64,000 nt of DNA from Isurus oxyrinchus (taxonomy: Eukaryota). The DNA is taken from assembly GCA_026770705.1 (NCBI GenBank), contig JANJGN010000034.1, forward strand, positions 15,128,001-15,192,000. The letters are read 5' to 3'. The position numbers were made by a program, and so were the translations under genes. Positions 1,540 through 61,555 of the stretch are shown piece by piece; the first letter of the stretch is position 1; every line of letters begins with the position of its first letter. Under the pieces are notes generated by a model that was not told the origin of the DNA, did not search any database, and worked only from the letters and a program-made list of their open reading frames with translations.

Positions 1540-1656
1540 TTATACATTCACATAAACAGGATCATCGGAGAAAACACAGCTTTTGTAAATATCCGAATCT
1601 GTATAAGGATTGACCACGCAGTTAGGTTTCATTTCCAGATACATCTCATCTTTCTT
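1540..1656 (-). CDS. Gene A terminal cytoplasmic exon (KKDEMYLEMKPNCVVNPYTDSDIYKSCVFSDDPVYVNV*)
   Basis: tttctgtttctattacag acceptor; 117 nt to TAA; same length and stop position as the paralog at 47877-47993; ends in Tyr motifs. Confidence 0.82.
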   Translation of the reverse strand, partial: KKDEMYLEMKPNCVVNPYTDSDIYKSCVFSDDPVYVNV

Positions 1657-4600
1657 CTGTAATAGAAACAGAAATGATCAGAGTGACTTTCAGAGTGATC
1701 AGTGTTTAGTATTATTGATCCAAATCGAAAATTCCACCCACATTAGATACATTAGTTATTGATACTGAACGGTGTTTGATTATTGATACTGAACGGGATT
1801 TGATTATTGATACTGAACGTTGTTTGATGATTGATACTGATCGGGGTTTGATTATTGATACTGAACAGTGTTTGATTATTGATACAGAACAGGGTTTGAT
1901 TATTGATACTGAACGGGGTTTGATTATTGATGCTGAATGGCGTTTGATTATTGATGCTGAACGGTGTTTGATTATTGATACTGAATGGGGTTTGATTATC
2001 GATACTGAACAGGGTTTGATTATTGATACTGAACGGGGTTTGATTATTAACACTGAACAGTGTGGGGTTTAATTTTTGATTCTGAATAGGGTTTGATTAT
2101 TGATACTGAACTGGTTTTGATTATTGATACTGGATGGAGTTTGATTATTGATACTGGATGGGGTTTGATTATTGATACTGAACGGGATTTGATTATTGAT
2201 ACTGAATGCGGTTTGATTTTCGATACAGAACAGGATTTGATTGTTGATACTGAACGGGGTTTGATTATTGACACTGAACTGGGTTTGATTATTGATACTG
2301 GATGGGGTTTGCTTATCGATACTGAACACGGTTTGATTATCGATACTGAACAGGGTTTGATTATTGATACTGAACGGGGTTTGATTATTGACACTGAACA
2401 GTGTGGGGTTTAATTTTTGATTTTGAATGGGGTTTGATTATTGATACTGAACTGGGTTTGATTATTGATACTGGATGGGGTTTGATTATTAATACTGAAC
2501 GGTGTTGGATTTGATTATTGATACTGAATGATGTCGAGTTCGATTATTGATACTGAGTGGTGTTGGGTTCAATTATTGGTGAGAGAGTTCCAGATTTGCA
2601 CTCCCCTTTGTGTGAAGAAGTATTTTGACATTATCCATGACCAGTCTCGCTTGAATTCAAAGGTCCTGCCCCCTTTGTTCTGGGCTCCCCACTCACTGGA
2701 AATAGTTTTTATCTTCTCATTGGTCAATTAAGTGAATTCCATTCGTTCCATTACTTACCCAAGACCAGTCCGACTGCTCGCCTGCTGAGTAACTGCCCAC
2801 ACGCTCTGCTTGGACTGAATGACTTCTTCCTGTGCTGCTCCTTCTGTGTATTTAATGAGAAAGGGTTGACATGTCACTCTGAGTCAAATCAGGAATGGAG
2901 GGACACCCCACCTTGAAGGATCTTAGTACTTTGGTATAAGCAAACTATTATCCCTTTGCGTTCTGATGGGCAGTCATGTTTAGAGTGTAAAGCTGGGCAG
3001 TCCTTGATGGAGTTTCTATTCAGTCTCACTTCTGAAGGTGCAGAGGTTCCTCATAACCCTTAGAAAGTGTCAGGGATGGGAGAATGTGTAAGAAGAGAAT
3101 GGAGAGAGTGAATGAAAGGGAGAGCATAAGGGCAGAAAAGAGGGAGTGAATGAGATGGGGAATGAGGAAGAGAAAGAGTGAGGCAGGAGGGGGAGTGTGA
3201 AATCCTAATGCCAGGACCATGGCCATAGTAAATCACATCAAAAACCTTTCTGTGTTCTCACTTGTCAATGCCTTGCTCTTCCATCTGGCAGGAATTATGT
3301 TGGCCATGAGACTGTGTCTACGTGTTATTATATTGTATGGTTATAAGCTTCTTATTTGGTTTGGATAGGAAACAGAGAGTAGGGATAAGAGGGACATTTT
3401 CACGTTGGCAAGCTGTGAATTTTGGAGTGCCACAAGGATCAGTGCTGGGACCTCAGCTATTTACAATCTATATTAATAAATTAGATGAAGAGACAGAGCA
3501 TAATGTATCTAAGTTTTCTGATGATACCGATCTAGGTGGGAATGTAAGCTGTCGGAAGGACACAGAGAGGTTGCAAGGAGATATAGATTGGTTAAATGAG
3601 TGGGCAGTAAGATGGCAGATGGAGTATAATGTGGGCAACTGTATAAGTTGTCACAATGATGTGACTTGTATATCAGTGATAATCATCTCTACTTTCATTG
3701 GCTGATCAAATATATATTGAATGTGCTTTTAAAAAGCAAGCAAAGACACCAATTAAAGATGGCTGCCACAGTCACCTGATGCCTAGTATTACAGGTTGAA
3801 CAGTTTTCTGGAAGGTTCCAATGTGGAATACAATTAAAACATGCCCATAAATTCTGTTATGTAATTCCACACCTACTGAGGTGAAAGACCTCTTTAAAAG
3901 ACTTACTGAAACTGTAATGTACCTGAGATTTGCATTTCTATAAAGCTACCTCTCAAAATATATAGAAAGCCTACTAGGCCAATAACTATGTGGAAAGGTG
4001 TGCTTCCTATCTTATCCAGATGGATATTGGCTTGTTCCGATGTTAATGGCTTAAACATTACAGAATCTAATCACCTCAGCCATGAAACAATAGCCATGGA
4101 CTGTCCAGATATGAGCTAAGCAAATACATTCTGAAATCATTATTGGGAGGAGGTCATTTTACTTGAATAACCATTTTTGAAATTTCTTGTATTAGAACAC
4201 GCAAGCTGCTGAGCACTAGTCTGGAAGAAACTTGCCAATGGGGCAGTAAAACACTCTCTCTCCCCTGCTCTCTCAAGTTCAAGTCCCTATTTCTGTTCTA
4301 GTTTGAAATCCAGTATAGATATAGAGAATTTCCATTGAAAGGAACCTGAGGTGCAAAAATCATTGACTTCAGGAAAAGACAGATTACGTTTTTAAAAAAA
4401 TGACAGAAACAGACTCCAGAAATTGCAGTTTAGATCGGTTTCAACTCCTGAAATCTCAAGAACACCACGGAGAAAAACTTGTCACAGCCACAAATATCAG
4501 CAAAGGATTCATAAACGGGGGACTCTCTACTTTATTTTCCTTTTTGCATTGAACTTTAATTTGATTGGGAAAGTAACTTTCTACCGTTTGACTTGTAATT

Positions 4601-7600
4601 CTGCATGCTGGTGGGTGTGTGTGTGCTATGAAAGTTGAGACACGGGTTTACCTTTTTAAACATTTTTTATATCTTTACCTGCATGGGTTTTTAACTCTTT
4701 GAAAACAAACCCCTTTTTTGTTTCAAGCTCAAGAAAACATGCCAGACTAGTTTCTTTGCAATTAGCACGTAAAAGGTTAAGCACAGACATTGAGTATATA
4801 TCTCGCTAAATTCACAAAAAGAAAATATCCTGTTACTGTCAGGCTTGGAGTGATTGGATAGGGGAGTTAGTCTTACCCTTCCTCCCATGGCCGGAACAAA
4901 GTGAATATTATTTTTAAAGTTTAAAGTGACAATGTTTAAAGAGATTTGGGTGTGCTTGTGCAAGGAACACAGAAAGTTAGCATGCAGGTGCAGCAAGCAA
5001 TTAGGAAGGCAAATGGCATGTTGGCCTTTATTGCAAGGGGATTGGAGTGAGGAATAAAGGAGTCTTACCACAATTGTACAGGACTTTGGCGAGACCACAT
5101 CTGATGTACTGTGTGCAGTTTTGGTCTCCACGTTTAAGACAGGATACACTTGCGTTGGAGGCGGGACAGCAAATATTCACGAAATTAGTCCCTGGCGTGA
5201 GGGGGGTGTCCTATGATGAGAAGCTGAGTAAATTGGGTCTGTCTTCTCTGTAGTTTAGAAGAATGTGAGATGAGCTCTTTGAAACATACACATTTCTGAA
5301 AGGGCTTATTAGGATAGAGGCTGAGAGATTGTTTCTGCTGGTCGGAGAATCTAAAACAGGGGGGCACAGCCTCAGGATAAGGGGCTGATCATTTAGGTCT
5401 GAAATGAGGAGAAATTTCTTCACTCAAAAGATGGTGAATCTTCAGAATTCTCTGTCCCAGAGGGTTGTGGATGCTCCTTCGTTGAATACATTTAAGGCTG
5501 GGATAGGCAGATTTTGGGTCTCTGAGGGAATTAAGGGATACGGGAAGTGGGCGGGACAATGGAGTTGAAGCCCGAGATCAGCCACGATTATAGTGAATGG
5601 CAGAGCAAGCTCGATGGGCTGACTGGTCTACTGCTCTGGTTTCTTGTGTTCTGGCCCTTGCCCTTTGGAAGGTTGGCCCCACCCCCAACCCGTTTTAAGC
5701 ACAAGGATTTTGGAGTGGGGTTGAATCTACTCAGTAAAAGAAGAAAAACTTGCTTTGATATAGCACCTTTCACAACCTCAGGATGTCCCAAAGCACTTTA
5801 CAATCCAGGCTGACACACCCAGTGCCAATACTGAGGGAATACTGAACTGTCGGATGAGACGCTAAAACATGGCCTCCGTCTGCCCTCTCAAAAAGATGTA
5901 AAAGATCTTGTGGATGCTATTAGAAGAAAAGCAAGGGGACTTCTTCCCAGTGTCCTGGGACCAATATTGATCCTTTAAAATCCGGACCTATCCAATGATA
6001 GATTATGTGGCCATTATCATGTTGGTGTTTGTGGGAGCTTGCTGTGCGCAAATTGGCTGCTAGGTTTCCTACATGACAACATTTTAAAAGTTTTTATTCA
6101 TTCATGGAATTGGGGGCATTGCTGGCTAGGCCAGTATTTATTGCCCATCCCTAACTGCCCTTGAGGACTGAGTGTCTTGCTAGGCCATTTTGAAGGATAT
6201 TTAAGAGTCAACCACATTACTGTGGGCCTGGAGTCGCCTGGAGGCCAGGCCGGGTAAGGACAGCAGATTTCCTTCCCTAAGGGACATCAGTGAACCGTAT
6301 GGGTTTTGACGACACTGGTTTCATGCTTACTGTTAGACTTTTAGTTCCAGATTTTTTATTGAATTCAAATTCACCGCCTGCCATGGTGGGATTCAAACCT
6401 GGGTCCCTAGAACTTTACGCTTGGTCTCTGGATTACTAGTCCAGTGTAATTAATTCACTGTAACTTGTGTTGCGACGTTATGAGCTTGTGAAAGGTGCTA
6501 CAGAAATGCCAGTTTTCTTGAAGGCGGGAAGTTTGAGGTAAGAGATGATTGAGATAACTAACCAACCAATTAAACCTTTGCACTTACTTTCTCACACACT
6601 TGAAGATGAAGAATCCACTCAGTCCAACACTCAAACAGATTCCAGCTCCAAGCAATCCTGCTTTCCATTCGTTGGAGGCTGCAGCTGTAAAAATGATCAA
6701 TGAAAGACTCCAGTACAGTTTTAGAATGATTCTCAAGTGTTCATTTTGAACTTGTGAACGACACAATCTGACAGCTAATTGAACAACTTCAGGCTAAGGA
6801 GCAGCTGGATTAATTCAGGTGGCAAGAGAAACTCATGGATGTATCTTTGTGTGTGCGTAGGGATGTGTTTCTGTCTCTGCTTCTTGTGTGTGTGTATGTC
6901 TGTGTGTCTGTGTGCATGTCTGTGTGCGTCTGTGTGTGTGTGTATGTCCGTTTGTGTGGTCTTTGTGCATCTTTGTTTCTGTCTGTCTGTGTAAGTTGTC
7001 ACGACTCACTGGGGATAGTGCGCTGTAATATCGAGTCCCACTGTTCCCCAAGCCGTGACAAATGTGAAAAGTTTGACCAAACCTCCAGATTGCCCCAATT
7101 CTACCTAACTGTTTAATTTAGGATAACAGAATACAAACACCAGGTTTGTAAACTTAATAAGTAAATAACTGTTTATTGAACAAACTGCTATTAACCAGTG
7201 GCACAAGAAAAAAAATATGAACTGCTAAGTTCTAACGCTATAACTTAAACTCTTCCCCTTCTTAAATCCTTATATACGCACATATAAGACACATGGGACA
7301 CACAAAAATATGGATTTTAAGGTTGGGATAAAACAATTCAGGAGTACAGAATTCAATGGGTTGATTTTGATCGATGTCTTCCAAATTCCTTTCAGTTCTT
7401 GTTGGGAACACAAGGTGGTCTCCCAGCACTTTCAGTATTTAGTTCACTGGTTGAGCACTTGTTTTTCAATGTCTCTAACAGTGATTTTCCCCTTTGTCTA
7501 TTCACAAGGGTTTTCAGAGAGAGATCAAGTTATAGAAATATGAGGAAAAAAAGCCAGCTAGCTATTAATGTGAAATTACTGGAATCTCCCACACACAGGA

Positions 7601-10600
7601 GAAATAGGTTTTAGATCTTGTTCCTTTCAGGCTAGGAGCTATTCAGCTGCACTGTCCTCATACAAAACCTGGTCAGGAGCTAATTAAAATGCTGTTGTCA
7701 GGCAGCTCCCTTGATCCAGGACTCCTTTCCAGCACCATCCTGTCTTTCATGGCACACTCTGTTCCAGGACTGCAACATTGTATATATCTCTCACCCTGCC
7801 CCAGTGGACAGGCTTTTCAAACGGCAGCCATTGAAGCTTTAAACCCACAGTCCAACAATAATAAAAAGATATGTTCTTTACAACAGTCCAACGGAATTAA
7901 AAAAAATAACTTACATACAAAGTGCGTATGGCTCTGAGCGTGTGTTTGTGTGCCGGTGTGGGTCAGTACTGAGGGAGTGCTGCACTGTTGGAAAGTCAGT
8001 ATTGTGGCAGCGCTGCACTGTTGGAGGTTCAGTACTGAGGGACTGCTGCACTGTCGGAGGATCAGGACTGAGGGAGTGCTGCACTGTCGGAGGATCAGTA
8101 CTGAGGGAACGATGCATTGTTGGAGGGTCAGGACTGAGGCAGCGCTGCATTGTCGGAGGGTCATACTGAGGGAGCGCTGCATTGTTGGAGCGTCAGTACT
8201 GAGGGAGGGCTGAACTGTCAGAGGGTCAGTACCGAGGGAGTGCTGCACTGTCGGAGGGTCAGTACTGAGGGAGTGGTGCACTCTTCAGAGTGCCGTCTTT
8301 CACATATAACATTAAAATGTGGCACCGACTGCCTTCTGAAGGTAAACAAAAGATCACATGATGCTATTCAAAGCAGAGGTGTTGCTGGTGTCCTGCCCTA
8401 TATTAATTAGTAAATGATATGGCCTGGTCCACACTAGATTGTGCACAGCAAGATGGCAGATAAAGACAACCTAGACTTTTACGGCTAATGTAGAGTGAAG
8501 GACGTATGTACTGAGAAAGAAGAGTGTCTGTACTTACATTGCACAGTTAGTGTGAGGGTCTGCTCCGACGAAACAGATGGATATCTCAATCTGCAGCTGA
8601 GAGTTTGTCCATGGTGTTTGAGTGATGGGATCAGGGTCAGAACAGAAGTATGGATCAGAGTGACACCATGCTGAGTTACAGTGTTTGACACTGATCCAGG
8701 TACGTCAGTGGGAGTGTCCCAGGTTAAGACAGGTGCTGCTGTTCCATTGCACGTTGTGTTGAAGGTGCAGCTTACATCCACACGCTTTCCTGCAATAATT
8801 TCAGCAGGGAATATTGTGGGTTTATCTGTGAAATCTAACAGACAGAGAATGGATCCTTTTAGAGAAATATAACGTGAAGCATCAGTTCAAATAGAAATCA
8901 CAGAGAAAGAACTTTTACAAGGAGGTTCTCAGAAGTGAAAGATTACAACGATCTGGAAAGAATTGCCTATTTTCTGATTAGCGAAATCCTTGAATTGGCC
9001 ATATTGGCATGAAGGTGGAGGGGCAACTCACAACTTGGAGGGAACTCGCTCATTACTGTCTCAGAAATCATTTCCAAATTTAAATTCTATACTGTCTCTG
9101 GCAGGACAGAAAAATTTGAAACAATCACTGAACCATCAGCCAGTCATATATCTCATTGCTTTTTATGAGAGCTTGCTGTGCACCAGTTGGCAGCTGTGTT
9201 TTTCTACATAGCAAGTTATTGCACTTCAACAATTTGTTCATTGACTTTGATTCACTTTGGGATGCCCTCAGGTGGGGAAAGGTGCTACAGAAATGCGAGA
9301 CTTTCTTTATTCAATATGTAAGACTTTTAAACGGGGCTAGAGAGATCTTTGGGATTGATTAGATAATTCTATGTGATTGTGTATCTCTACGTAAGAGAAT
9401 ATATTTTGTTATTTTTATATTTGGTGGCGAGTCTGTCACTGAGCTTAATATACATTCACCCAGAGTCCATTGAATTGACAATAATGGGGTGAGGGTGAAG
9501 GAGCAGCTTACACCTTGGACAGAACTGGCTCATCACTTCCTCAAAAATGAGTTCCAAAGTTCAAATAAACCTATCCCCGTTCAAAACGATCCTTGAACCT
9601 GCACCTAAAACAGATGATCAATTATTTATCTCATTGCTGTTTGTGGGAGCTTGCTGTGCACAAATCAGTTGCTGCATCTCCTACATAAGAACTGTCACTA
9701 CATTTCTAAAGTACTTCATTATCTGTGAAGGGATTTGGATTGTCCGGAGGAGGTGATAGGTGCTATAGAAATGTGAATTTTTCTTTTTCCGATTTGTAAG
9801 ACTTTTAAACAGGGTTAAGGAGATCGATGTGAGTGGATAACCTGATAACATTGATGGACACAGTCAATACATTTAATCACTGATATTAAAGTGACTGTTA
9901 GCGGTTGCTTTAGGACTGAACTGGAAGCTATCACCAGGTTATTGAGAATCAGACAGTGTGTTATAATAAGCTGTGTTTTGTGTTAATATGTAAACGTCAC
10001 AGTTTGTGTTATTTCCCATTGAGTGTTGCATGTGAATTGTTGAGTAATTATAACACAGCACTTACCAGAAACTTTAAGCTGGGTTACAGCAGAGTAGTTG
10101 GAGCTTTTATTGTTGCCAGATCTTATTCTAAAATAATAAGGCCCTGCATCTTCCCGTGTGATGTTGTTTATAATCAGGGAACAGTCACCATCTTTCAGGT
10201 CTCCAGACAGCCGGGTCCGATGGCGGAACCGTGGTAACTCGTGATTGTGATCCTTGGAGTGAAAGGCTACAGATGACCTTCCTCCTTTTTTATTAAACCA
10301 GACTCCATCTCGCGATTGGTTTTTCAAATGTGATGAATAACTGTAATGACATGGAATCTGTACACACGAACCTTCCTGCGCTGTCACCTCTCGTAGAGTG
10401 TTGATTTTCTGCTCACGTGACAGTCCAACTAGGGAGAAAAATATCAATATTTAACACTGGAACTCACCAGGGTTACATCAACAGCATCTCCCTCCCCTTT
10501 GACCTCTCCTAGGGCAGCAATGTGCTGGAATGCCCATCACCTCCTGCTCAGACCCCTTTCTCCCTCAGACATGTACCACCTTTAAAGCATCATCACTGAG

Positions 10601-14521: not shown

Positions 14522-15064
14522 TGTCCACTCTCAGATATTTCTTCAGTTTCTCACTCTCAAGCTATGAAAGAAAAAGGAGTTAATGAGACCTCACCTCTTG
14601 TCCAACAGCTCTCGAGAGATCAGAACTGCTTTTAGACAATGTATTCACAGACTAATTTGATTCTCTGTGGGATGATAGGTGCTCTGCAGAGAGTTACAAG
14701 GCTTTAAGAAAGAAAAACAGTGAAGGATTGGCATATCAATAGCGCCTTTCGCCACCTCATGACGTCCCAAAGCTCAGGTCCCTGCACTTTTGTGCGACAG
14801 ATTGAGGCATAGGCCCCAATAACATGTCCCAAAGCACTTCTCGTTGAATAAAGCATTTTTTGATGTGTCATTTCTATTGTAATCTAGGAAATGGTGAGAA
14901 ATGCAGAATTCAATTTGCACACACGCACTGCAATGTGATGCTCAACAGATTATCTGGTTTTCAGCGGTATTGTTTGAGGGATAAACATGGGCCGTAAGAC
15001 CAGGGAGACCGCATTCAAAATTCCATCTACCTGAGACACTGCCTTAGTTTAACATTTCATCTGA

Positions 15065-47876: not shown

Positions 47877-47993
47877 TTATACATTCCCATACACAGACTC
47901 CTTCTCAAACTCGCAGGTTTCGTAAAGATCATCATCTGTATCAGGATTGATTCCACGGTTAGATTTCATTTCCAAATCCTTCTCATCTTTCTT
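47877..47993 (-). CDS. Gene B terminal cytoplasmic exon ([38 protein letters not shown])
   Basis: 117 nt, same acceptor and TAA position as in gene A. Confidence 0.82.
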   Translation of the reverse strand, partial: KKDEKDLEMKSNRGINPDTDDDLYETCEFEKESVYGNV

Positions 47994-50552
47994 CTGTAAT
48001 AGAAACAGAAATGATCAGATTGACAATCAAATTATTGATCCAAATCGAAAATTCTAATCACAATAGATGTATGAATTATTGATACTGAACGGATTTTGGT
48101 TATTGATACTGAATGGGGTTTGATTATTGATACAGGACAGGGTTTGATTATTGATACTGAACGGGATTTGATTATTGATACTGAACAGGATTTGATTATT
48201 GATACTGAACAGGATTTGATTATTGATACTGAGCAAGGTTTGATTATTGATACTGAACAGGGTTTGATTATTGCTACTGAACTGGGTTTGATTATTGATA
48301 CTGAACGGGGTTTGATTATTGATACTGAATTGGGTTTGATTATTGATTCTGAACGGGGTTTGAATATTGATACTGAACTTTTTTGGGTTTGATTATTGAT
48401 ACTGAATGGAGTTTGATTATTGATAATGAACTGGGTTTGATTATTGATACTGATCTTATTTGGGTTTGATTATTGATACTGAATGGTGTTGGGTTTGATT
48501 ATTGATACTGAGCAGGGTTTGATTATTGAGACTGAAAAGGGTTTGATTATTGATACTGAACGGTGTTTGATTATTGATACTGAACAGGGTTTGATTATTG
48601 ATACTGAACTGGGTTTGATTATTGATACTGAGCAGGGTTTGATTGTTGATACTGAACTTTGTTGGGTTTGATTATTGATACTGAATGGGATTTGATTATT
48701 GATACTGAACTGGGTTCGATTATTGATACTGAACGGTGTTTGATTGTTGATACTGAACTTTGTTGGGTTTGATTATTGATACTGAACTGGGTTTGATTAT
48801 TGATACTGAACTGGGTTTTATTGTTGATACTGAACTTTGTTGGGTTTGATTATTGATACTGAACTGGGTTTGATTATTGATACTGAACTTTGAGGGTTTT
48901 AATTATTGCTGGAGAAAGTTCCAGATTTCCACTCCCCTTTGTTGGAAGAAGTGCTTCTTGATATCACCCCTGAGAGGCCTGTCTCAAATTATAATGTTCT
49001 GGTCCCTTGTCCTGTCTCCTCACTCCATAGGTCGTGGAAATGAATTCCAATCGTTCCGATACTTACCCCAGTCCTGTCCGACTGCTCGCCTGGGGAGTTA
49101 CTGCCGAAGCGCTCTACTTGGGCTGAATGACCTCTTCCTGTGCTGCTCTCTCTGTATATTTAATTAGAACGCGTTGATGGATCATTGAGAGTCAAATCAG
49201 GATTGGGGGAACAATGAGAAAACACTCCCTTGTTGAATTTAACAACCTTTGTTTTATTTGCTCAATTCTGTTCATTTAACAGTTCATTCTTCATATCCTG
49301 ACATGCTGTTGTGGTTCCAGTATATATCTGGTCAATCGCTGAGGGAGTTTCTACTCGATCTTATTCCCGAGGCTGCAATGGATTTTCTGAGGGAGCAGAA
49401 AATGTCAGTGATCGGATCACGTACAGGAAAGGGTGGAAGAGAGTGGATGAGAGGGAGAGATGAAAGGAAGAAAGGAAGAGTGAATGAGACAGGGAAAAGT
49501 GAAGAGATAGAGTAAGACAGGAGGATAAGCGTGAAATCCTAATGCCAGGATCACAACCGGAATGAATCATGTCAAGTGCCACTGTTGTTCTATTTTGGCA
49601 ATGTCTTGCTTGGTTCTCTGGCAGGAATTGTGTTGACAGTGTGACTGTGTGTCTACATGTTACTGTACTACACATTTATAGGCATCTTATTTGGTTCTGG
49701 CTCACGATCTCTGAGCGATTGGCCCCACGCCCAACCCAGGACTTGGGGTGGGTTTTGAATCTACTCCGGAAAGGAAGAAAAACCTGCATTTATGTAGCGC
49801 TTTTCATAACCTCAGGACATCCCGAAGCATTTCACAATGTGGGTCAATGCACCCAGTGCCAACACTGAGGGAGTACTGCAATGTTGGACGAGACATTAAA
49901 CCAAGGCCCTGTCTGCCTTCTCAGGTAGATGTAAAAGATCCCGTGGACACTATTGGGAGAAGAGCACAGGGAATTCTCCCGAGTTTCTTTTGGTCAACAT
50001 ATATCCCTCAAAATCCCAACATGACCTAGGACAGATTATCTGGCCGTTATCATGTTGCTGTTTGTGGGAGCTTGCTGTGCTCAGATCGGCTACCCCGTTT
50101 CCTACATTACAAGGCCAGAAAAGTATTTCATTCACTTTAAATTGTTTTGGGACATCGTGAGCTTGTGAGAGGTGCTATAGAAATGCAAGGTTCCTCTTGA
50201 AGAAGAGAAGTTTGAGCTGAGGATGTTGAAGAACAACCAATTAAACCTTGGCACTTACTTCCTCACACACTTGAAGATAAAAAATGCATTCAGTCTAGCA
50301 CTCAAAGTGATTCCAGCTCCAAGCAATCCTGCTTTCCATTCATTGGAGGCTGCAGCTGTAGAAAGAGCCAATGAATGACTCCGGTACAGTTTTACAATTG
50401 TTCTCAGATGTGCACGTAATCATTCTGAACTTGTGATGACTCAATCTGACTGACAGTAAAGTCCAATTGATCAACTTCGGTCTTAGGAGTAGCCAGGTTA
50501 ATAGAGGTGGCAAGAGAAACTCATGGGTGTGTGTTCTTGCTGTTTAGGAGAG

Positions 50553-50601: not shown

Positions 50602-50638
<37 letters not shown>

Positions 50639-53600
50639 TTTGTCTACATCTGTGTTAGCATGTGTGTGAGTTTGTGTGTGAGTGGGTTTGTGTGTGTTTC
50701 CATGTGTGTGTGAATGGGTTTGTGTGTGTCTCCATGTGTGTGTGAGTGGGTTTGTGTGTGTCTCCGTGTGTGTGCTCATGTATCTTCTATGTCTGTCTAT
50801 GTGTGTGCGTATGTGTGTGAAAGATTCTGTGTGTCTCTATGCGCATCTGTATTTCTGTGTATTTGTGTGTGGACATGTAACTGCCAGGGACGCCTCTACC
50901 ACAAAGACCAGCCTGTTACTATCACCAACATAGTTGCAGCAAAAGTGTCTTTGTAAATCCAACTTCCTTGTCGATGCCAATTTGCTCATATCTAAAGAAT
51001 TTTTGAAGTTTTTATACACTCAGATTCAACAGTGATGGTTATGAACCCCTTCACTGCTCCATGTTCATTCTCTGCCACACACTTATAGCCTCCAGTGTCC
51101 CTGGATGTAACGCAAGGAATCACCAACCACAACTCATTTTTGGAACTTGTTCTGTTCATTGGGACATTAAGATGTCGCCATGTCAGGTTAGAAGCTGGGA
51201 AGCTCTCGACAGAGCAGATTATCACTGCAGAATTCCCCTCAACTATATTGATCGATGAAGTGTCAATCATATCAAGAGAAGTAATTGAGAGATTCTGTGA
51301 TGCGTCTAAAAACAAATAAAGATCAGTTAATTTACATTGACTGAAGCACATTGAGACACCCTGAGAATGTGAAAGGTGTGATATCAATGTAGGTTCCTTC
51401 ACCACAAAGCACATAATCCATGCAGACACTTCAGTTCAGTACTGAGGGAGTGCTGCACTGTTGGAGGGTCAGTACTGAGGGAGTGCTGCGCTGTTAGAGG
51501 GTCAGTACTGAGGAAGTGCAGCATTGTTGGAGCGTCAGTACAGAGAGAGCGCTGCACTGTAGGAGGGTCAGTGCACTGGAAGTCCTGCACAGTTCTAAGG
51601 TCAGTACTGAGGTATCGCTGCACTGCTGGAGAATCAGCACTGCGGGAGTGCTGCACTGTCAGAGGGCCAGTACTGAGGGAGTGCTGCTTTGTTAGAGGGT
51701 CAGTCATTCATGTACATGTTGCACAGCAGCGATGCAAGCATGCTTCCCTGAGGCAGACCATTCTTCTGAATATGCCACTTGCTGCACTTCCCACCTAGTT
51801 CAACATAGAACCGGCGATTCTGAAGCATACTCTCTTAAGTGAATATCTTTTGTCATCTCTAGGCTACTGCAGAGGAGATGTCTATGGTTCACTGTATCAT
51901 ATGCTGCTGACAGGTCTACAAAAACAGCACCTGTTACCATTCCTTGCTCAAAACCATCTTCGATATGTTGTGTGAGGTTGAGCAGTTGGCTTGTTGTTGA
52001 TTTGCCGGGGCGGAAACCTGCTTGCTCTGGAATGATCTTCTCATCTACAGTTGGTGCTATCCTTTTGAGTATCAGGCGTTCAAACACCTTATTGGTGTGG
52101 CAAAGCAGTGGGATTGGCCGAAAACTCTTAGGATCTGAGGGATCTTTTCCGGGCTTTAATAGTGTGATTACATATGCCTTCTGCCAAATATTAGGTAGAT
52201 TGTGTGTTGCCAGACAGTGGCTGAACAATTGTAGGAGCCATTTCTTTGCTTGCTGTCCAAAATGCTATATCTGCTCCATTGCTATGTTGTCAAGACCAAT
52301 TGCTTTCCTGTAGTTTAGACTAGATATTCCCGTTTCCAGCTCTTCTATGGAGAATGGTCCAGTGAAGCCAGGGTCAACGGTGTACTTCTTCCTATCCAGT
52401 TGTGCTCTTGGTTGTTTCTTGTTGATTTTTCCATTTAGGAGCAACTAGTGTGCAACTTGGTTTGCAGACACACTTGGATGTTGGGCAGCTTTCTTGGGAT
52501 CGCCTCCAAGTTTGCGTATGAGAGACCATGCCTTCTTGCTGTTTTTTTGTAAGATCTGTTGTCTCTATCAAGGTGTCCCAGGTGTTTTGACACTCTTGAG
52601 AGATACTTAACATCATCCTCTCATCGGTAGATATTGTTTCCTCTGAGAAGGGGTCAGATTCAAACATTGAGACATACTCCCAGTAGAGTTCAGCATTCTC
52701 CTTGGTGAGACCAGAGATGTAGTGTGCTCTACAACCTTGGGGGATCTTCTTTCTGGCTGTTTTCTGGACAGCTTTTGCAAACAGGTTGTAGTGCTCAGGT
52801 AGTGGTTTAATGTTTAACCTTACGGTCAAGTGCTCGTATGAGCCCGTTCCAATTGGCCTTCTTGTAGTTGAAGCACCTTTTGAATGGTACAATGGTTGGT
52901 AACACTGCTGCATTTACCTGGATACCAATAGGACAGTGTTGTGTCTGTCGTATTGGGTCTGTGACAAGCTTCTTGCAGAGGCCAGCGATGTTGTTGCTGA
53001 CAATGGCAAGGTCTGGTTTATAACTACACTTCCAGGGGGCACTGTGGAAGGAGGCTGGCAATTTAGGATCATGGATGAGACTAAGCTGGTTAGCGTCCAT
53101 CTATTCTTCAACTGCTTCTCCATTGCTGTTAGACTCCATGTACCCCCATTGGGTACTGTGGCTATTAAAGTCTCCAATGATGATCTGTAGTTTACTATGC
53201 AGATTGGTTACAGGGTTAGAGAAGTTGAAATCTGTGCCAGGTGGCTTGTACACTGAGGTCACTACTACTTTGCTCAGCTCTACGGTTAGAATTTCGATGT
53301 TGTCCTTCTCTGTTCTAGAAGTGGCTTCTACAACTGAACCAGCTCTAACAAATACAGCACTGCCATATTGTCAATGAGGTCTTTCAATAACCAGGAACAT
53401 TCCTGGTATTTTTGGGCGGTTGTTCTCACTTCCTCTGTGTGTCTCCTGCAGGCAGAGGACATCACACTGCAACTTATTGCATAATGTAGCGAGGAGTTTT
53501 GTTTAGCTACAGAGAACCCTTCAACGTTAGCAGATGTAACAGTCAATGCCGGTCTTGAAAAAGACCTGTGTTTCTGACATCAACGACTTCCGTCTTCAGG

Positions 53601-56600
53601 CATGATGTTGGTACTTGATCAAATGGACACGAATGACCAACCTTTCGATGGTGTCACATGCCATTTTATATATGCTGATGACTTCTGTGTCACTGCCCAA
53701 AGCACTGATTTTAACACCGTGGAGAAAACCCTTTCTGAGGCCTTGGAGGGACTTATATCCTACTATGAAGAAAACCACCTTCGCGCAAACTCATCGAAGA
53801 CGCAAGTTTGTGCATTCCTCCTCAGAAACCGTGAAGCCAAACGCCAGCTTAAAGTAACCTGGTGTGGAGCAACACTGATGCATTGCGAGCACCCTATCTA
53901 CTTAGGAGTCACCCTTGACAGATGCCTCACCTTCAAGAGCCACATCGAAAAGACAAAGGCAAAAGTGAGCGCATGAACCAACATCCTGACTAAGCTCATT
54001 AACACAAAATGGGGAGCAAGCCTGAAAACAATGCGAACCAGTGCACTTGCTCTTTGCTATTCCACTGCCGAATATGCCTGCACTGCATGGGAAAGATCTA
54101 CTCATGCTAAGAAGATGGACGCTGTTCTGAATGCACACTGCCAACTTATCACAGGTTGTTTAAAACCAACAAACACCAACAGCTTATATATCCTGGCGGG
54201 TATCACTCCCCTTGATATAAGAAGAATGGTTGCCAGCCGGAAAGACCGACTCCGTCAAACATCAGGTGAGAGGCACCCTCTACATGGTCATACACCTACA
54301 CCCAGCTGCCTAAAGTCAAGGAAGACCTTCATGAACAGTGTTGTTCCATGACAATCAACCCCATTTGAAGCCCGCATCGCCTTGTGGAAAGACCGGCTCG
54401 CCAGTCTCGAACAACCCCTACAGGATGAAAGCCTTCCCCCAGGAGCTAATTGCAACTGGGCAACCTGGAAGTGCCTTAACAGACTTAGGACTGGTGTAGG
54501 TCTTCAAAGGTGTCACTAAACAAATGGGGATATACAACCAGCCCGACAACTTTTGAAAGTGGAACTGAGTCACAGACTATGCAACATCTCCTGCAATGCC
54601 TATCGCTAGAGTAACCCTGCACTGTTGCAGATCTAGCTGAATTCAACAACAAGGCACATGCTGGGCCATGCATAGACTGTCCGTGGACACGATAAGAAGA
54701 AGAGGGTCAGTACTGAGGGAGTGTTGCGCTTTCGGAGGGACAGTACTGAGGGAGTGCTGTGCTGTCGGAGGGTCAGTACTGAGGGAGCACTGCACTGTCG
54801 GAGGGGCACTATTGAGGGAGTGCTGCTCTGTTGGAAGTGATGTTTCTCATGTAAGCTGTTAAGCCAAGGATCCAACTCATCTCTCAACTGGATGTAAATG
54901 ATCCCATGTTGCTATTCAGTGGAAAGATCTCTCTGGTTAAATATTATGAATAAAAAAACATGACCTGGTTCTCACCGTATTGTTGTTTGTGGAATCTTGC
55001 TGTGCACAAGAATGAAGGATGTCTGTACTTACATTGCACAGTTAGTACGAGGGTCCGCTCCGATGAAACAGATGCATATCTCACTCTGCAGCTGAGAGTG
55101 TGTCCGTGGTGTTTGAGTGATGGGATCAGGGTCAGAACAGAAGTATAGGTCAGAGTGACACCATACTGAGTTACAGTGTTTGAGACTGATCCAGGTATGT
55201 CAGTGGGAGTGTCCCAGGTTAAGACAGGTGCTGCTGTTCCATTGCACGTTGTGTTGAAGGTGCAGCTTACATCCACACGCTTTCCTGCAATAATTTCAGC
55301 AGGGAATATCGTGGGTTTATCTGTGAAATCTAACACACAAAGAATGGATCCTTTTAGAGAAATATAATGTGAAGCATCAGTTCAAATAGAAATCACAGTC
55401 CCACAAGAGAAAGCACTTTTTTAATGATGATGTCAGAACTGAGATTAAATCCAATTCAGAAATACTTTCCTATTTTCTGACTTAGCGGAGGGTCTGTCAC
55501 TCAGCTTAATACACTTTCACTCCGAGACCCTTGATTTGACGAGCGATGTGAGGGCGGAAGAGCAGCTCACAGTTCGGGGAGAACTGGCCCCTCACTTTCT
55601 CAGAAACCTTTTCCAAAGTTAAATTGCAGACTGTCCACAGCAGGCCAGAAAAAGTTTGAAACAACCTTTCAAACAGATGATCAGGTTATTGATCACTTTG
55701 CTGCATGTTGGAGTTTCCTCTGCATAAATTAGCTGTTGTTACTCCTCCATTGCAACTGTCACTACACTTCAAGAATTACTTCACTAACTTTCGAAGCTCT
55801 TTGGGTCGTCCTGAGTTTGTGAAAGGCACTGTCTGTGGGAGCTTGCTGTGCACAAATTGGCTAATGTGTTTCCAACATTACAGCAGTAACCACGATGCAG
55901 AACTTACATCATTGGCTGTAACACAATTTGGGACATCCAGAGGTTTTGAAACGCGCTATAGAAATGCAAGTGTTTTGTCTTTCCTATTTTCAAACTTGGT
56001 GGGGAATCTGTCACTGAGCTGAATACACTTTCACTCCCAGACCCTTGACTTGACAACACTGGGGTGTGGGTGATGGAGCAGCCCACAGCTCATGGAATCC
56101 TGGCTCATCATTCTCTCAGAGATCTGAGTCACTGATCCCATTGCTCTCTGTGGGAGCTTCCTGTGCACAAACTCACTGCCACGTTAGAACAGTGACTACA
56201 AATCAGGAAGTATTTCATTGGCTGTGATGGGATTTGGATTGTCCAGAGTTGGTGAAAGGCGCTTTAGAAATGTGAGTCTTTCTTTTGTTAATACGGAAGA
56301 CTTTTAAGCAGAATTAGAGAGATTGATGGGAATGGATAACATTGATGGACACAGTCAATACATTTAATCATTGATATTAAAGTGAGTAATAGAGGTTGCT
56401 TTAGGACTGAACTGGAAGCTATCACCAGGTTATTGAGAATCAGACAGTGTGTTATAATAAGCTGTGTTTTGTGTTAATACGTAAACGTCACAGTTTGTGT
56501 TATTTCCCATTGAGTGTTGAATGTGAATTATTGAGTAATTGAACCCAAAGGGAAAAGATAAAAAAACTTAAACTTATATTTTGAAAACGGAAATTAGAAC

Positions 56601-59600
56601 AGAAAATGCTGGAAAAACTCAGAAGTTCTGGCAGCATCTGTGGAGAGAGAAACAGAGTTAACATTTCAAGTCCATATGACTCTTCTTCTGCTTCAGAGCA
56701 GAACCCACTGGCTTTCCCAACATTTCCTGTTTTAATTTCAGATTTCCAGCATCTGCAGTATTTTGCTTTTAAAGGCAGAGATTGGGCCTCGGAGTTTGGG
56801 AACTACAGTTCCCATCAGGCCCCGGGGGTGTCTGCACATGCGCCGATCATTGTTTTTCACCATCTCTGGCCTCTGTGCATGTGCTGAAGCCGCAGATTGG
56901 CCTCACGTGCGCAGTTGGCGCGTTGTACCATCTACAGGCCAATAAACGGTCCTGCACATGCGCCCAGTCAGTTTATTTTGTTTTTCCCAGCTGGAAACTG
57001 TTCCTGCATGCCTGCGCAGAAGGGAAAAACCAAGGAAGGAAATGAAACAGCGGGAGTAGAGGGTCAGGCGACCTAGAAGAGGAATGCCATTCCGCAGAAG
57101 AGGCAGAACACGGGAGCCGCAGGGGGGCAGGTCCCAATGAGAAGAAAAAAGTCGAGTGGGACAGAAAGAATCCCCACGAAGACAATCGAGTTAGGGGGTG
57201 AGGACAGGAATCTGAAACAAATCCTGTTAAGTGGAATTGAAAATAAGGAGCGGAAAAGAGTCTCCTAATTAAAGAGACCGAGTTGCGGGGAGCAGACTTG
57301 GAATGAGGTGGGATTAAGAAAAGCCAGAAGACCTGAGGAGGTAGCCGAAGGTCGGTGACTCCTTATTATGGGCTTTCGGAGCAGTGGTGTTCTGTTTGGC
57401 ACAGCCAAATAGGGGTGAGCGTGTGCATGGAAGACGCAGCTTAAGTGCACATAGAGATCCAGGGGAAGGGAACCTTGGAAAGAGAGGTTGAAGCCCTAGA
57501 AGTGTTTCCTTCTTGGAGACGCCTGCGAGAAAGTGTCGTTTGGGAGAGAACGCCAAAGTGAGTTCTTCGAACTTGGAGATTGGAAGCCCTCGTGATAAAG
57601 ACAGGTTTTCAGTGAGACTGGATGGCTCACAGTGTGATGAGGGTCTGGGGGGTTGATGAGAAAGCCAGAGAAATTTGGTTAAATTTTGGTTAAAGGTGGA
57701 CCACAGTTCACCTATTAGTTTACATGGGCTGTATACTTACTGTGAACATTAGAGTATAGGATAGATTTTATAGCTTGTGTTATCTTTCCCAATATGTATA
57801 TATCTGTAAATGTATTCTTGGGGTGAAGGAGTAGTGTAATCTAATTCATCTTTTCTTATTTCATAAGTGTTTTATTCTATTGGTAAAGGTTCATTAGCAG
57901 ACTCCTGTGACTGTTCTATAGCCACTCTCCACATTTCTAAACAAAAAATAAAAGTTAGGGCCTATCAAGCCAGGCTCCACCTTGCGATCTGACTTGTCCA
58001 TCAGTAACATCAGCTGGGATCGTAATACAGCACTTACCAGAAACGTGAAGCTGGGTTGCAGGATAGTAGCTGTAACTATTGCTGCTGTCAAATTCTATTC
58101 TGAAATAATAAGGTCCTACATCTTCCCGTGTGATGTTGTTTATAATCAGGGAACAGTCGCTATCTTTCAGGTCTCCAGACAGCCGGGTTGGATGGCGGAA
58201 CCGTGGTAACTCGTGACTGTGATCCTTGGAGTGAAAGACTATGGGAGCCCAGGGAATCTGTTCCTCTTTATTAAACCAGACTCCAACTCGCGGTTGGTTT
58301 TCCAACTCTGATGGATAACTGTAATGACATGGAATCTGTACACACGAACCTTCCTGCGCTGCCACTTCTCGTGGAATGTCGCATTTCCACTCTTGTGACA
58401 TTCCAACTGGGGAGAGAAAAATCAATATTTAACACTGGACCCTCGACAAATCACTCTGGATCCTCATTGTCTCAGGAATCTCTTTGGATCCTCTTTGGCT
58501 AAGGAATCGCTTTGGGGATTCTGATGCAGCATTGTAGACTGACTTGTCCCCAAGCTCTGCACTGACCCTACTCCAGCAGATACTGTGAAACACACTAACA
58601 AAGCGCCTCTAGCCTGAGCTCTACATATGTCGGAGGTGCGACTATGTTGGGTTCACAAGTTTCACAGATGATCTCACTGTATTTTTATTAGAACTGAACT
58701 GGAACCAACATGGAACCCCTCCTACTCTTCCCCAGTATTCATGATCTCTGCAGCTGGGCTGAAGAGTTGCTGATCACAATGTACACGAACAATTTGAAAT
58801 GAAAAACACAATTTCTAAATTTGAGGAGGACTGCAACAAATTGAAGGAGGATGGTAATAAACTTGTAGAATGGGCAAATGATTGGCAAATATAGTTGAAC
58901 ACAGATAAATGTGAGTTCGTATATTTTGGTAGGAAGCATAAGGAGGCAATTTATTACTTGGAAGATGCAAGACTAGGTCGGGTAGAGAAACGAAAGGATC
59001 TTGGAGTATAAATGTATCAACCACTAAAAGCTGCACCACAGATTAGCAAGGCCAAAAGAGAAGTGAACCAAGCGCTGGATTTTCTTTCTGAAGGAATAGA
59101 ATTGAAAAGTGGGGAAGTTATGTTAAACTTGTCTTGAACCTTGGTTAGACCACACTTAGGCCAGAATTTTTCTGTCGGCGAGTTGGGGATGGGGCCTGCT
59201 CTCTGACACGGAAATGACGTGGGATGACGTCAGGAGGAACCCCCAATGTCATCCCGCCCCATTTAAATATTCAGGAAGGCAGGCAGACAACAAAATCAGC
59301 TGTCTGCCTGCCGACTTGTCAATGGCCAATTGAGGCCATTAACAGGATAATTAACCCAATTAAAGGCCCTGCCCGTCCAATCTTAAGGCTGGTGGGCAGG
59401 CCAGGAGCACTTCCCTCTGGGTAAGGCCCGCCCACTCAAAATGGCGGCGGGGCCCGTTTCAGCGGTGGAGTTCGGCTGCCCGCCCATGCCGAGCAGGTGG
59501 GACCCACCCGCCCATCAAGGGCTAAATTCTGCCCTTAGAGTACTGCGTACAGCTCTAAAAGGCAGGGCCACAGGTAAAAAGGTGATTAAATCAGCAAACC

Positions 59601-61555
59601 AAATATGGTGTATTATTTCTGACCTTATCGATAGGGGAGGTGGCAGCATAATGGTATTGTCTACTGGACTAGTATTGCAAACACCCACTGTAATGCCCTG
59701 GAGACCGGGGTTTGAATCCCACCATGGCAGATGGTGGGATCTGAATTCATTAAAAAAATCTGCAACTATATTACACTGCTCCTTCACCCCAAGAATACCT
59801 CTACAGATAGCCATGACACTATTGTGGTAAAAACCCATCTGGTTCACTAATGTCCCCTTTAGAGAAGGAAATCTGTCATCCCCATCCTTACCTGGTCTGA
59901 CCTACATGTGACTCCAGACTCCTAAATGCCCTCCGAACAAGGGCAATTAGGGATGGCCAACAAATGCTGACCGAGGAGGTGCCACCCACATCCAATGAAT
60001 AAAAAAAAATTGAAAAGTAGGGAAATTATGTTAAACTTGTCTTGAACCTCACACTGAGAGAATTGTGTACAGTTCTGGCCACCATATTATAACAAAGATA
60101 TAGAGACCCTGGAGAGAGTGCAGAGAAGATTTACTGTGTGGGTTTACATATCAGGAAAGGATTGACAGGCTGGGACTCTTCTCTCCTAAAAAGAGAAGGC
60201 TGGGGATGGGGGCAACCTGTTAGAGGTCTTTAAAACTCTGAATGGTTTTATGAGAGTGGATACAGAGAAAACATTTTCTCTTGTGGGGTGAAGCAGAACT
60301 AAAGGCCGTCAATATAAGATAGTTACCGAGAAATCCAATAGGGGAATTCAGGAGAAACTTCTCTACCCAGCAGGGATTGAGAATGCTGACGAGTGATGCT
60401 TACACTCCAAGACAAGGAAAGATGAGGTGAATTATTTTCACGCAGTTGGATAAATACTAGAAGCGGAAAAATTTGAAGGGCTGTGGGGTAAAGAGCAGGA
60501 AGAAATTGGGACCAATTGAATAGGTTTTTTAAGGAGATTGCACATGCAGGATGGGCCAAATGGTTTCCTCCTGTGCTGCATCACAATAAGATTCTTCGAA
60601 TTTTGATTGCACAAGAGATCAGAGGCAAATAGGGAAACTCTGTCAGTTTGACAACTTGTTGCACTGACCAGTTTGTTTTCAGTTTACCTTTCAGCTAGCT
60701 GCTTCCTTCTTGTGGTTATTCTGTTGCTGAGCCTGGGCAGGAAGTGCGAGGGTTGAACTCCGTGTCTATTCTAAGTGCTTCAACATTGCGGTCATGACAA
60801 CTTCTCACTAATATGAGTAAACCTGAGCTCCTCCAATTCTGAGATCTTGTCCACCCCTGAGTTTTATGGAGGAAATTCCAGAGCTTAGGACCCCAAGCAC
60901 CTGAATGCATGGCTGCCAGCGGTGGAACGATGGGAATTGGAGGATGCTCAAGGGACCAGAATTGGAGCACGGCAGATATCTTGGAGGGGTGTAGAGGCTG
61001 GAGGAGGTTACAGAGATAGGGATGGTTGTCGGGACTGGAGGAGGTTACAGAGATTGGGAGGATTGTAGGGACTGCAGGAAGTTACAGAGATAGGGAGTGT
61101 TGTAGGGGCTGGAGGAGGTTACAGAGATAGGAAGGGTTGTAGGACCTGGAGGAGGCTACAGAGATAGGGAGGATTGTGCGGCTGGAGGAGGTTACAGAGA
61201 ATGGGAGGATTGCGGGGCTGGAGGAGGTTGCAGAGATAGGGAGGGTTGTAGGGACTAGAGATGGTTACAGAGATAGGGAAGGTTTGCAAGATTTTGGAGA
61301 GATTTCAGCAGGAGAACCTGAATTTTAATTTTCTGGTGCTGTCAGACAGGGAGTCAGTGTATATCAGTGAGCACAGGGGTGATGGGTGATTGGGACTTGG
61401 TGTGAGTTTGTACACTGGCTCACTGCTGAATCGGTTCCCAATCAGAGCTCAATAGGAATGATCTTTTACAAAGACTATTAACCATAAATCTGTCTTGAGT
61501 TGACGATGATATTACCTTGGAGAACTGATAGGAGGAAGTAAGATTTCCCGATCAT
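47877..61555 (-). CDS. Siglec-like receptor gene B (whole model): leader 61516..61555, V 58038..58406, C2 55033..55329, [Ig3 51024..51305, donor mutated], TM 50259..50355, cyto1 49067..49151, cyto2 47877..47993; 334 aa if Ig3 is skipped
   Basis: Exon-by-exon paralogy with gene A; all exons open and phase-compatible; only the Ig3 donor is non-canonical. Confidence 0.8.
48075..48900. repeat. 24-bp minisatellite in the last intron of gene B
   Basis: Same unit as 1757-2572. Confidence 0.95.
49067..49151 (-). CDS. Gene B cytoplasmic exon 1 ([29 protein letters not shown])
   Basis: 85 nt, cag acceptor and gtaagt donor, open in the phase 2->0 frame. Confidence 0.75.
50259..50355 (-). CDS. Gene B transmembrane exon ([33 protein letters not shown])
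   Basis: 97 nt, AG/GT intact, paralog of 6588-6684; manual translation. Confidence 0.85.
50525..50870. repeat. (GT)n microsatellite region
   Basis: Long perfect and degenerate GT runs. Confidence 0.92.
51024..51305 (-). pseudogene. Gene B third Ig (C2/I-set) exon with inactivated splice donor
   Basis: ORF 50992..51429: [22 protein letters not shown]...[14 protein letters not shown]; good acceptor (ttatttgtttttag), but the expected phase-1 donor reads ctgagt rather than gtgagt (position 51023). Confidence 0.8.
51435..51704. repeat. 33-bp minisatellite (continues at 54701-54835 beyond the LINE insertion)
   Basis: Tandem units on both sides of the insertion. Confidence 0.88.
51705..54700 (+). 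mobile_element. ~3-kb non-LTR retrotransposon (Ingi/Vingi-like; clade from recalled motifs), 5' two-thirds inverted
   Basis: Minus arm 51705-53590: [50 protein letters not shown]. Plus arm 53620-54700: [33 protein letters not shown] tail. AGAGGGTCAGT on both flanks. Confidence 0.85.
55033..55329 (-). CDS. Gene B C2-set exon
   Basis: Within ORF 54944..55336; 297 nt; 9 of 99 residues differ from gene A C2 (manual count). Confidence 0.92.
56540..58025. mobile_element. LTR-like insertion in gene B intron 2, with a nested inverted Penelope-like terminal fragment (~56596-56770)
   Basis: Absent from the A and C introns (empty site tgagtaatta|taacacagcacttac); nested piece resembles the PLE 3' termini in both orientations. 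Confidence 0.55.
58038..58406 (-). CDS. Gene B Siglec-type V-set exon
   Basis: Within ORF 57955..58425; 369 nt, AG/GT intact; CVQIPC, DCSL, YYFR. Confidence 0.92.
58780..59158 (+). mobile_element. CR1 fragment
   Basis: RT C-terminal motifs; continues after the MITE as gagtactgcgtacag. Confidence 0.65.
59159..59534. mobile_element. PIF/Harbinger MITE
   Basis: GGCCAGAATTT...AAATTCTGCCC inverted termini, TTA duplication (59156-59158, 59535-59537). Confidence 0.85.
60985..61285. repeat. ~34-bp tandem repeat
   Basis: Paralog of 14030-14290. Confidence 0.88.
61516..61555 (-). CDS. Gene B leader exon ([13 protein letters not shown])
   Basis: 40 nt, same ATG context and donor as gene A. Confidence 0.8.

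Follow-up and report, generated by a model that had tools for sequence, protein, structure and literature searches.

A Tandem Cluster of Siglec-Like Genes in Isurus oxyrinchus, Probably Part of a Family Specific to Sharks and Rays

Introduction

The mammalian CD33-related Siglecs, among them CD33 and the Siglec-5/-14 pair, are the closest described counterparts of the locus studied here. They are short receptors of two or three immunoglobulin (Ig) domains, encoded in tandem clusters and headed by a fast-changing V-set domain with a conserved Arg and the Siglec Cys pattern. We analyzed a 64,000-nucleotide stretch of the Isurus oxyrinchus genome (GenBank assembly GCA_026770705.1, contig JANJGN010000034.1, positions 15,128,001 to 15,192,000 of the forward strand; hereafter, the window, which contains no N) in which three units with these same features lie in tandem on the minus strand: gene A, with V, C2, transmembrane (TM), and tail exons; gene B, with one C2 exon more; and unit C, with a leader and a V exon. 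An initial annotation of this DNA had read A and B as an activating/inhibitory receptor pair within an independently expanded family. Our results uphold the family and argue against the pair.

Further likenesses link the locus to the CD33-related Siglecs. CD33 domain 2 is nearest to the first C2 domain of the window genes, and the wider shark and ray family includes tails with an immunoreceptor tyrosine-based inhibitory motif (ITIM) and switch motif (ITSM) as well as short-tailed members with Arg in the TM segment. The differences are that the shark and ray V domains form their own clade, whose sister relation to the amniote CD33-related group does not emerge from the tree and is not rejected by the approximately unbiased (AU) test (p-AU 0.27), and that the tails of A and B end in Y-x-N-V and have no ITIM-plus-ITSM arrangement. 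MAG (Siglec-4) is the best solved match to the V domain of B (E = 5e-18), and NCBI labels several relatives MAG-like, but MAG has five Ig domains, whereas A has two and B three, and the MAG-like proteins of sharks (∼629 aa; P0198 in our numbering of protein models) lie outside the family clade. CD22 (Siglec-2), like A and B, has several tail tyrosines, and the available text of one report describes a Tyr in its tail that recruits Grb2 and not SHP-1 (PMC3342095). CD22 differs in its seven Ig domains and three ITIMs; its V domain is a weak match (E = 0.002), and shark CD22-like proteins fall elsewhere in the tree.

The family itself is already predicted by automatic annotation. Literature searches on Siglecs in sharks, cartilaginous fish, elasmobranchs, teleosts, and the elephant shark, judged from their listings, found no description of it. 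A survey of fish Siglecs, in its available text, reports fish genomes without CD33-related Siglecs, speculates that CD22 and MAG serve as inhibitory substitutes, and does not mention sharks (PMC7226832); the one mention of Siglecs in the available text of the whale shark genome paper is within a list.

Results

The Three Units Have Siglec-Type V Domains

Exons were located by listing open reading frames (ORFs) and by tblastn of exon translations against the 64-kb window, and searches were run exon by exon throughout. All three V exons match Pfam V-set above the cut-off (E = 1.2e-14 in A; B and C are in Table 1), as they do Ig_CD22 (4.3e-11 in A). Against solved structures in the Protein Data Bank (PDB), the V exon of B finds MAG first and Siglec-5 (4e-15) after it, and then sialoadhesin, CD33, and Siglec-8, -7, and -10 (1e-11 to 4e-13); Siglec-15 (6e-07) and CD22 are weaker. 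The top 17 PDB matches are Siglecs only.

Each V domain contains the cysteine motifs G-S-C-V-Q-I-P-C and D-C-S-L together with Y-[YF]-F-R, which aligns with Y-Y-F-R of MAG and Y-F-F-R of Siglec-5. The Arg of this motif is presumably MAG R118, consistent with the chain numbering of the PDB match. In a 97-row alignment of V domains, the F-strand Arg is present in at least 90% of rows; two cysteines are invariant, and a third is found in at least 90% of rows. The first C2 exons match C2-set_2, and the second C2 exon of B (C2b) matches Ig_3 or I-set. Among PDB structures, the closest to the first C2 domain of B is CD33 domain 2, and the three cysteines all align; the Siglec Cys positions (B- and E-strand, and the V-to-C2 pair) align with MAG in the V domain and with CD33 domain 2 in the C2 domain. 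Splice borders in the units are AG/GT everywhere except at the C2b donor of B. By their sequence, A, B, and C are of the Siglec type, with an N-terminal V-set domain, the conserved F-strand Arg, and a Cys pattern whose bonds are predicted. The three minus-strand leader-plus-V units and their Arg of the sialic acid-contacting type are as the initial annotation had described them.

The V Domains Form a Shark and Ray Clade

A word search with the V exon of B returned 6 of 7 candidates, all of them Carcharodon or Scyliorhinus proteins. Searching with a catshark model, P0002, gave 96 of 512 candidates, including 92 models from sharks, rays, skates, or sawfish and 2 from primates; the relatives bear automatic names that range from Siglec-5 to -15 through CD33-like to MAG-like. 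An exhaustive search with the same V exon of B reached 1209 proteins at E ≤ 0.001. Twenty of these were named (shark MAG-like, SMP-like, and CD22-like proteins, bony-vertebrate MAG, ray-finned short Siglec-like proteins, and reptile Siglecs), and lemur Siglec-8 is also among the named relatives.

A fast tree was built from the best V domain of each of 199 rows (196 proteins and the 3 window V exons), after 29 of 225 matched proteins had been dropped for matches of at most 95 model positions; it served only to guide the choice of rows. From the 199, we picked 79 rows by hand for a careful tree. Group labels came from 22 named proteins, 16 of them tree rows outside the elasmobranch family, and were set after the fast tree, which makes the AU tests post hoc. 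In the careful tree, the 29 rows of the shark and ray family form one clade (support 99/99), into which the window V domains fall, with the amniote CD33-related rows (100/97) and bony-vertebrate MAG (100/96) in other clades and the backbone unresolved. Constraining the family with the amniote CD33-related rows was not rejected (post hoc p-AU 0.27), nor was constraining it with the shark MAG/SMP-like rows (post hoc p-AU 0.53). Because the backbone is unresolved and neither constraint is rejected, the V domain alone does not decide the nearest kin of the family. The clade lies outside the MAG, CD22-like, and amniote CD33-related groups, and its members do not nest as simple orthologues of MAG, CD22, or CD33-related Siglecs. 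The tree thus indicates that a Siglec-type family expanded independently in sharks and rays, as had been proposed.

A MAG orthologue was considered and ruled out on Ig exon number (two in A and three in B vs. five) and on the separate position of shark MAG-like proteins in the tree. Two Carcharodon models named MAG-like, P0282 and P0283, combine a B-type C2b, TM segment, and tail with another kind of V domain, whose Y-Y-F-Y, on manual reading, replaces the Arg by Tyr; they could be members that do not bind sialic acid.

Genes A and B Are Duplicates of One Receptor Type

Gene A (14521-1540, minus strand) consists of leader, V, C2, TM, and two cytoplasmic exons. Its leader exon has an acceptor before 14561 and the donor CAAG/gtaata, and the N termini of relatives align at this leader. 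The coding exons total 999 nt, or 332 codons, the same as in the Carcharodon model P0028 (332 aa), which is annotated as “myeloid cell surface antigen CD33-like.” P0028 is 93.4% identical to A in V, 94.9% in C2, 93.9% in TM, 90% in the 85-nt cytoplasmic exon, and 97.4% in the last exon, and has the same junctions. With six coding exons and a length like those of A, P0028 is by sequence its orthologue. Since P0028 has the length and junctions of A at 90-97% exon identity, we regard gene A as a conserved gene and the source of the window as closely related to the white shark. P0028 comes from another species and assembly and is an automatic model; we found no study of it.

Gene B (61555-47877, minus strand) has the order V-C2-C2-TM-tail, with seven exons whose frames are all open. 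It is a colinear duplicate of A except for C2b, of which neither tblastn nor sensitive blastn found a remnant in A. Divergence between the two is uneven along the gene. At the DNA level, they are 94.9% identical over the first C2 exon and flanks (390 bp), 84.9% in V, 78.4% in TM, and 79.9% at the 3′ end; at the protein level, the V domains are 66.7% and the first C2 domains ∼90% identical. The C2 domains, which had been called near-identical, are therefore similar and no closer than that. Synonymous divergence (dS) is lowest in the first C2 exon (C2a), at 0.054, and rises through V (0.159) and TM (0.20) to the last exon (0.51). Because dS in C2a is far below that of V, TM, and tail, C2a was probably kept or made alike between the genes by gene conversion. 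The ratio of nonsynonymous to synonymous divergence (dN/dS) is 1.08 in V, where two loop regions, the N-terminal strand, and the stretch ahead of the G strand hold the differences. The low dS of C2a beside a V dN/dS near 1 fits a fast-changing binding face next to a homogenized stalk exon.

The differences between A and B reported in the initial annotation were confirmed for ligand loops, TM polarity, and tail tyrosines. V changes cluster in loops at 67% identity. In the TM helix, A has Gly and Ser where B has Arg and Asn, which amounts to four nonsynonymous changes within five codons. The last exon has four Tyr in A and two in B, and the 85-nt exon of A has one extra Tyr.

The Family Has Three Types of Signaling End

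We counted tail types by motif in 93 relatives, of which 37 models have no TM segment and are probably partial. The type 1 ending, that of A and B, consists of a glycine-rich TM segment, K-C-V-R-K, and the 85-nt exon, closed by a last exon with Y-x-x-C, 6-7 residues, and Y-x-N-[VIM]; it was found in 13 of the 93 relatives and spans 7 shark and 5 batoid species. Type 2 (15/93) has an ITIM-like motif followed by T-x-Y-[AS]-x-I and is colinear with the tail of primate Siglec-8. Type 3, with a different TM exon that carries Arg and a short tail, accounts for 7 of the 93. No match to the type 3 Arg-TM exon of relatives was found in the window (tblastn, E < 1). Cetorhinus P0014, Stegostoma P0037, and Mustelus P0022 have an additional cytoplasmic exon, which likewise has no match there at E ≤ 50; the search found the tail exon only. 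In the catshark, P0002 (type 3, the activating model) and P0013 (type 2, the inhibitory model) have V domains that are sisters in the tree (100/98) and 84.6% identical, which argues that true activating/inhibitory pairs exist in the shark and ray family.

Neither A nor B has a TxYxx[IV] motif in its tail. By the ITIM signature given in the available text of the fish survey (PMC7226832), only the last motif of B, S-V-Y-G-N-V, qualifies, as A has Pro at −2. The type 1 tail is unlike described Siglec tails and is conserved across the 12 shark and batoid species mentioned above, so that the proposal of a signaling code of its own holds for the tail. Phosphotyrosine in pY-x-N recruits Grb2-type SH2 domains, and the Y-x-N of the last motif of A and B has this Grb2-type form. 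One may speculate, with more doubt than confidence, that the A/B tail exon is a third Siglec signaling module beside ITIM/ITSM and Arg-TM and that it predates the shark-ray split. The candidate module reads acidic-x-[IL]-Y-x-x-C, 6-7 residues, [IV]-Y-x-N-[VI], stop; its two tyrosines are spaced as in an ITAM (immunoreceptor tyrosine-based activation motif), and the last is readable as ITIM and Grb2 site together. If true, shark Siglecs would have a three-way signaling code, and B would be a receptor caught changing class.

The Membrane Arg of Gene B Is Not a Family Feature

In the pair that was originally proposed, the TM Arg of B would recruit an ITAM adaptor of the DAP12 or FcR-gamma type, and A would signal by its tyrosines. 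The change of mid-helix Gly and Ser to Arg and Asn, the unequal number of tail tyrosines, the use of Arg-bearing TM segments by other members of the family, and a Glu at the position of the Arg in a Mustelus relative are all consistent with such a division of labor. We nevertheless consider it very improbable. A and B share their TM exon type, the 85-nt exon, and a long Tyr-bearing tail, and because both carry the type 1 TM segment and tail, they are not an on/off pair. The short-tailed Arg-TM module that does look activating occurs in the type 3 relatives and nowhere in the window. In place of the short, motif-free tail and conserved charged TM residue of an activating member, B keeps the long tail in full, with its two Tyr, and its V domain is less like that of A than one would expect of a pair, whose members would have nearly the same ligand-binding domain.

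The Arg itself is a one-base change, AGA in B against GGA in A. Among 23 related TM segments, its position is occupied by Gly in 19, Phe in 2, Glu in 1, Val in 1, and Arg in none, and the Cetorhinus models P0014/15, whose V domains are nearest to that of B, have Gly there. The codon of B is taken from the assembly sequence. KIR2DL4, a receptor of an unrelated Ig family, is a hybrid with a TM Arg and a long tail, and receptors of its type resemble B in combining a charged TM residue with a Tyr-bearing tail; as the Arg of B is not conserved, the likeness may be accident.

Contigs that span the Arg codon point the same way. We aligned Logan contigs of 4 runs (X1-X4, from 20 runs, none on record as RNA; their RNA nature is guessed) on 47850-53849, which is the 3′ half of B, with its C2b, TM, and cytoplasmic exons. 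Both contigs that cover the codon read GGA. The spliced contigs give Cys, Val, and Gly in place of the Thr, Ala, and Arg of B; an unspliced X2 contig, like B at the other listed TM positions, has GGA as well. Joints at 50347/51025 (X2, X4) and 49148/50262 (X4) correspond to splicing of C2b to TM and of TM to the 85-nt exon, and further joints end C2b-type exons after 51024. The letters that bridge these joints spell peptides of Carcharodon P0282, P0283, and P0287 and not of B, and five differences from B are common to every contig over C2b. In a close paralogue, splicing uses TM and 85-nt exon borders of the B type. P0282 and P0283 also agree with the spliced contigs seen over this half of the gene. 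No contig identical to B was found on its coding exons in these runs.

Gene B May Be Losing Function

Several features of B raise the question of whether it is decaying or already nonfunctional, which would make A the sole working receptor. Where paralogue contigs splice C2b (joint 51024/51025), B reads CT at 51023-51022, followed by gagt, and the sole in-frame GT donor, six bases on, is weak (GAGT/gtataa). TM hydropathy falls from 1.97 in A to 1.44 in B. Its V exon contains an extra Cys in the N-terminal strand (58384-58386 region, Q-E-W-K-C-D), possibly unpaired, that is not in A, C, or most relatives, and V dN/dS is near 1. The lack of B-identical contigs fits as well, as does the lack of a clear one-to-one orthologue among the proteins that the searches returned. 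We rate this account as unlikely, for the following reasons. All seven frames of B are open, and its other splice sites are canonical. The reading frame survives whether C2b is left out or the GT six bases downstream serves as donor, and the Cetorhinus isoform model P0015 is without C2b. The final Tyr motif of B is unbroken and conforms to the ITIM consensus.

The fast tree places the V domain of B with Cetorhinus P0014/15/P0007 (support 93), a grouping that the 79-row tree does not resolve. The last exon of B is 69% identical to that of Cetorhinus P0014 and, by manual count, ∼76% identical to the tail of Carcharodon P0282.

Unit C Is a Leader and V Cassette

Unit C was described from the outset as leader and V only, and the search between 35.7 kb and 14.6 kb, which found neither C2, TM, or tail exons nor their remnants but repeats alone, supports this. 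Its nearest V domains, at 85% identity, are those of Carcharodon Arg-TM models. As C has no C2, TM, or tail of its own, as its nearest V domains belong to Arg-TM models, and as relatives join V to V, it is either a relic or an additional head for gene A.

In the second case, C would be an extra 5′ cassette of gene A, which could yield a product with two heads (V-V-C2) or serve as an alternative first V. The leader and V exon of C are intact with good splice sites, the phase 1-1 of V exons lets V-to-V splicing stay in frame, and no other exon lies in the gap between C and A. Among relatives, the protein models P0007, P0010, and P0286 join V to V at identical borders, and at least five (P0098-P0102) have two to four V domains. 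These multi-V proteins are, however, automatic models. Some 21 kb of retroelement-rich DNA separates the V exon of C from the leader of A, a gene that possesses a start codon and an upstream exon of its own, and the affinity of the C V domain for Arg-TM models would be just as expected of a relic of an activating gene. A cassette serving A is thus conceivable, if on balance doubtful.

Feature Coordinates and Repeats

Table 1. Exons of genes A and B and unit C in the window
Unit	Feature	Position	Strand	Remarks
A	Leader exon	14482..14561	-	ATG 14521; coding part 14521-14482 ends phase 1
A	V-set exon	10066..10428	-	363 nt, phase 1-1; Siglec Cys pattern and Y-Y-F-R
A	First C2-set exon	8538..8834	-	297 nt; Pfam C2-set_2 4.4e-07; splice sites checked
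A	TM exon	6588..6684	-	97 nt; helix uncharged, best 19-mer hydropathy 1.97
A	Cytoplasmic exon	2759..2843	-	85 nt; junctions agree with P0028 protein
A	Last coding exon and stop	1540..1656	-	Tail end P-V-Y-V-N-V
B	Leader coding part	61516..61555	-	ATG 61555
B	V-set exon	58038..58406	-	369 nt; Pfam V-set 7.5e-11; best PDB match MAG 5e-18
B	First C2-set exon	55033..55329	-	Pfam C2-set_2 1.2e-07; PDB match CD33 domain 2, 6e-06
B	Second C2 exon (C2b, Ig_3/I-set type)	51018..51305	-	Pfam Ig_3 5.8e-11; absent from A
B	TM exon	50259..50355	-	Arg (AGA 50296-50294) and Asn in helix; hydropathy 1.44
B	Cytoplasmic exon	49067..49151	-	85 nt, open in same frame as that of A
B	Last coding exon and stop	47877..47993	-	Tail end S-V-Y-G-N-V
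C	Leader coding part	44604..44643	-	ATG 44643
C	V-set exon	35704..36066	-	Pfam V-set 1.8e-12; open frame, both splice sites intact

The 21 kb between C and A holds reverse-transcriptase ORFs. Further ORFs of this kind at 51800-54350 (minus strand; RVT_1 3.7e-14 for 51800-52228) lie between the two C2 exons of B and fill most of the extra 3 kb found there relative to A. An unbroken 667-aa ORF at 27655-29658 (plus strand) has a weak reverse-transcriptase match (27 bits; Pfam cut-off 29.6) and, we presume, resembles a Penelope-type element. Broken copies lie at ∼17119-18645 (plus) and 26509-27392 (minus), and the C-terminal part occurs three times in the C-to-A gap. The leader-to-V intron of C holds a DDE_Tnp_4 ORF (38944-39645, plus strand; Harbinger-type transposase, E = 8.6e-11). 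A 1.4-kb repeat at 94.8% identity, present in the leader-to-V intron of B (59413-60821) and downstream of the C V exon (31845-33254), is probably a young transposon copy.

Three minisatellite families recur in each unit at corresponding positions. The last intron of A (1756-2528) and that of B (48075-48889) hold a 24-bp array; a 33-bp array follows the first C2 exon and precedes the leaders (7960-8282, 15074-15335, 51436-51704, 62048-62703); and a 37-bp array lies just past each leader (14048-14293, 44034-44387, 60983-61284). Copies of the 85-nt cytoplasmic exon also stand upstream of the leaders of A (15569-15653), C (∼45209-45293), and B (part of 62719-62802). Those of A and C are full length with an open coding frame, the A copy with AG/GT borders, and that of B is truncated. 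In the Cetorhinus P0015 and Carcharodon P0287 models, the cytoplasmic exon runs into the leader of the next gene in another frame. Together, the upstream copies and these models suggest read-through or a shared noncoding first exon.

Discussion

The window probably covers part of a tandem cluster from a shark- and ray-specific Siglec family; A (V-C2-TM-tail) and B (V-C2-C2-TM-tail) would be duplicates of one receptor type and C a spare leader-plus-V cassette. Each receptor would present an outer V-set domain, with an Arg of the sialic acid-binding type, on one or two C2 stalk domains, above a membrane helix rich in glycine and a ∼75-residue tail, counted from TM to stop, that ends in an exon of Y-x-x-C, 7 residues, Y-x-N-V, and stop. 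The V domain may bind a sialylated ligand, on which the tail tyrosines would be phosphorylated and recruit SH2 proteins, of the Grb2 type by pY-x-N and, in B, possibly also of the SHP type by S-x-Y-x-x-V. After duplication, the V loops would have diverged fast while the first C2 domain was kept or homogenized. The membrane Arg of B would be a recent single-base change, and the true on/off members of the family would be located outside the window.

Several observations weigh against this reading. The first Tyr motif of A and B is without the Asn present in most other species. Gene B has weak points, namely the CT at the usual C2b donor, the lowered TM hydropathy, and the fewer tyrosines, and may not work; no contig on its coding exons in the 3′ half was identical to it. 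Gene conversion in C2a, finally, is deduced from a single dS contrast over 77 synonymous sites.

With gene A and its Carcharodon counterpart, the window contributes a clear pair of orthologues to the family, along with a case of fast V-loop change beside a homogenized stalk exon. The Arg of B looks like a fresh mutation, a caution against deducing a paired receptor from one charged residue. More broadly, sharks and rays have a large family of short tandem receptors with inhibitory, activating, and third-type endings. Siglecs with several outputs in these animals would mean that Siglec-style self-recognition is much older than mammals or arose twice, and either answer bears on the evolution of innate immune checkpoints.

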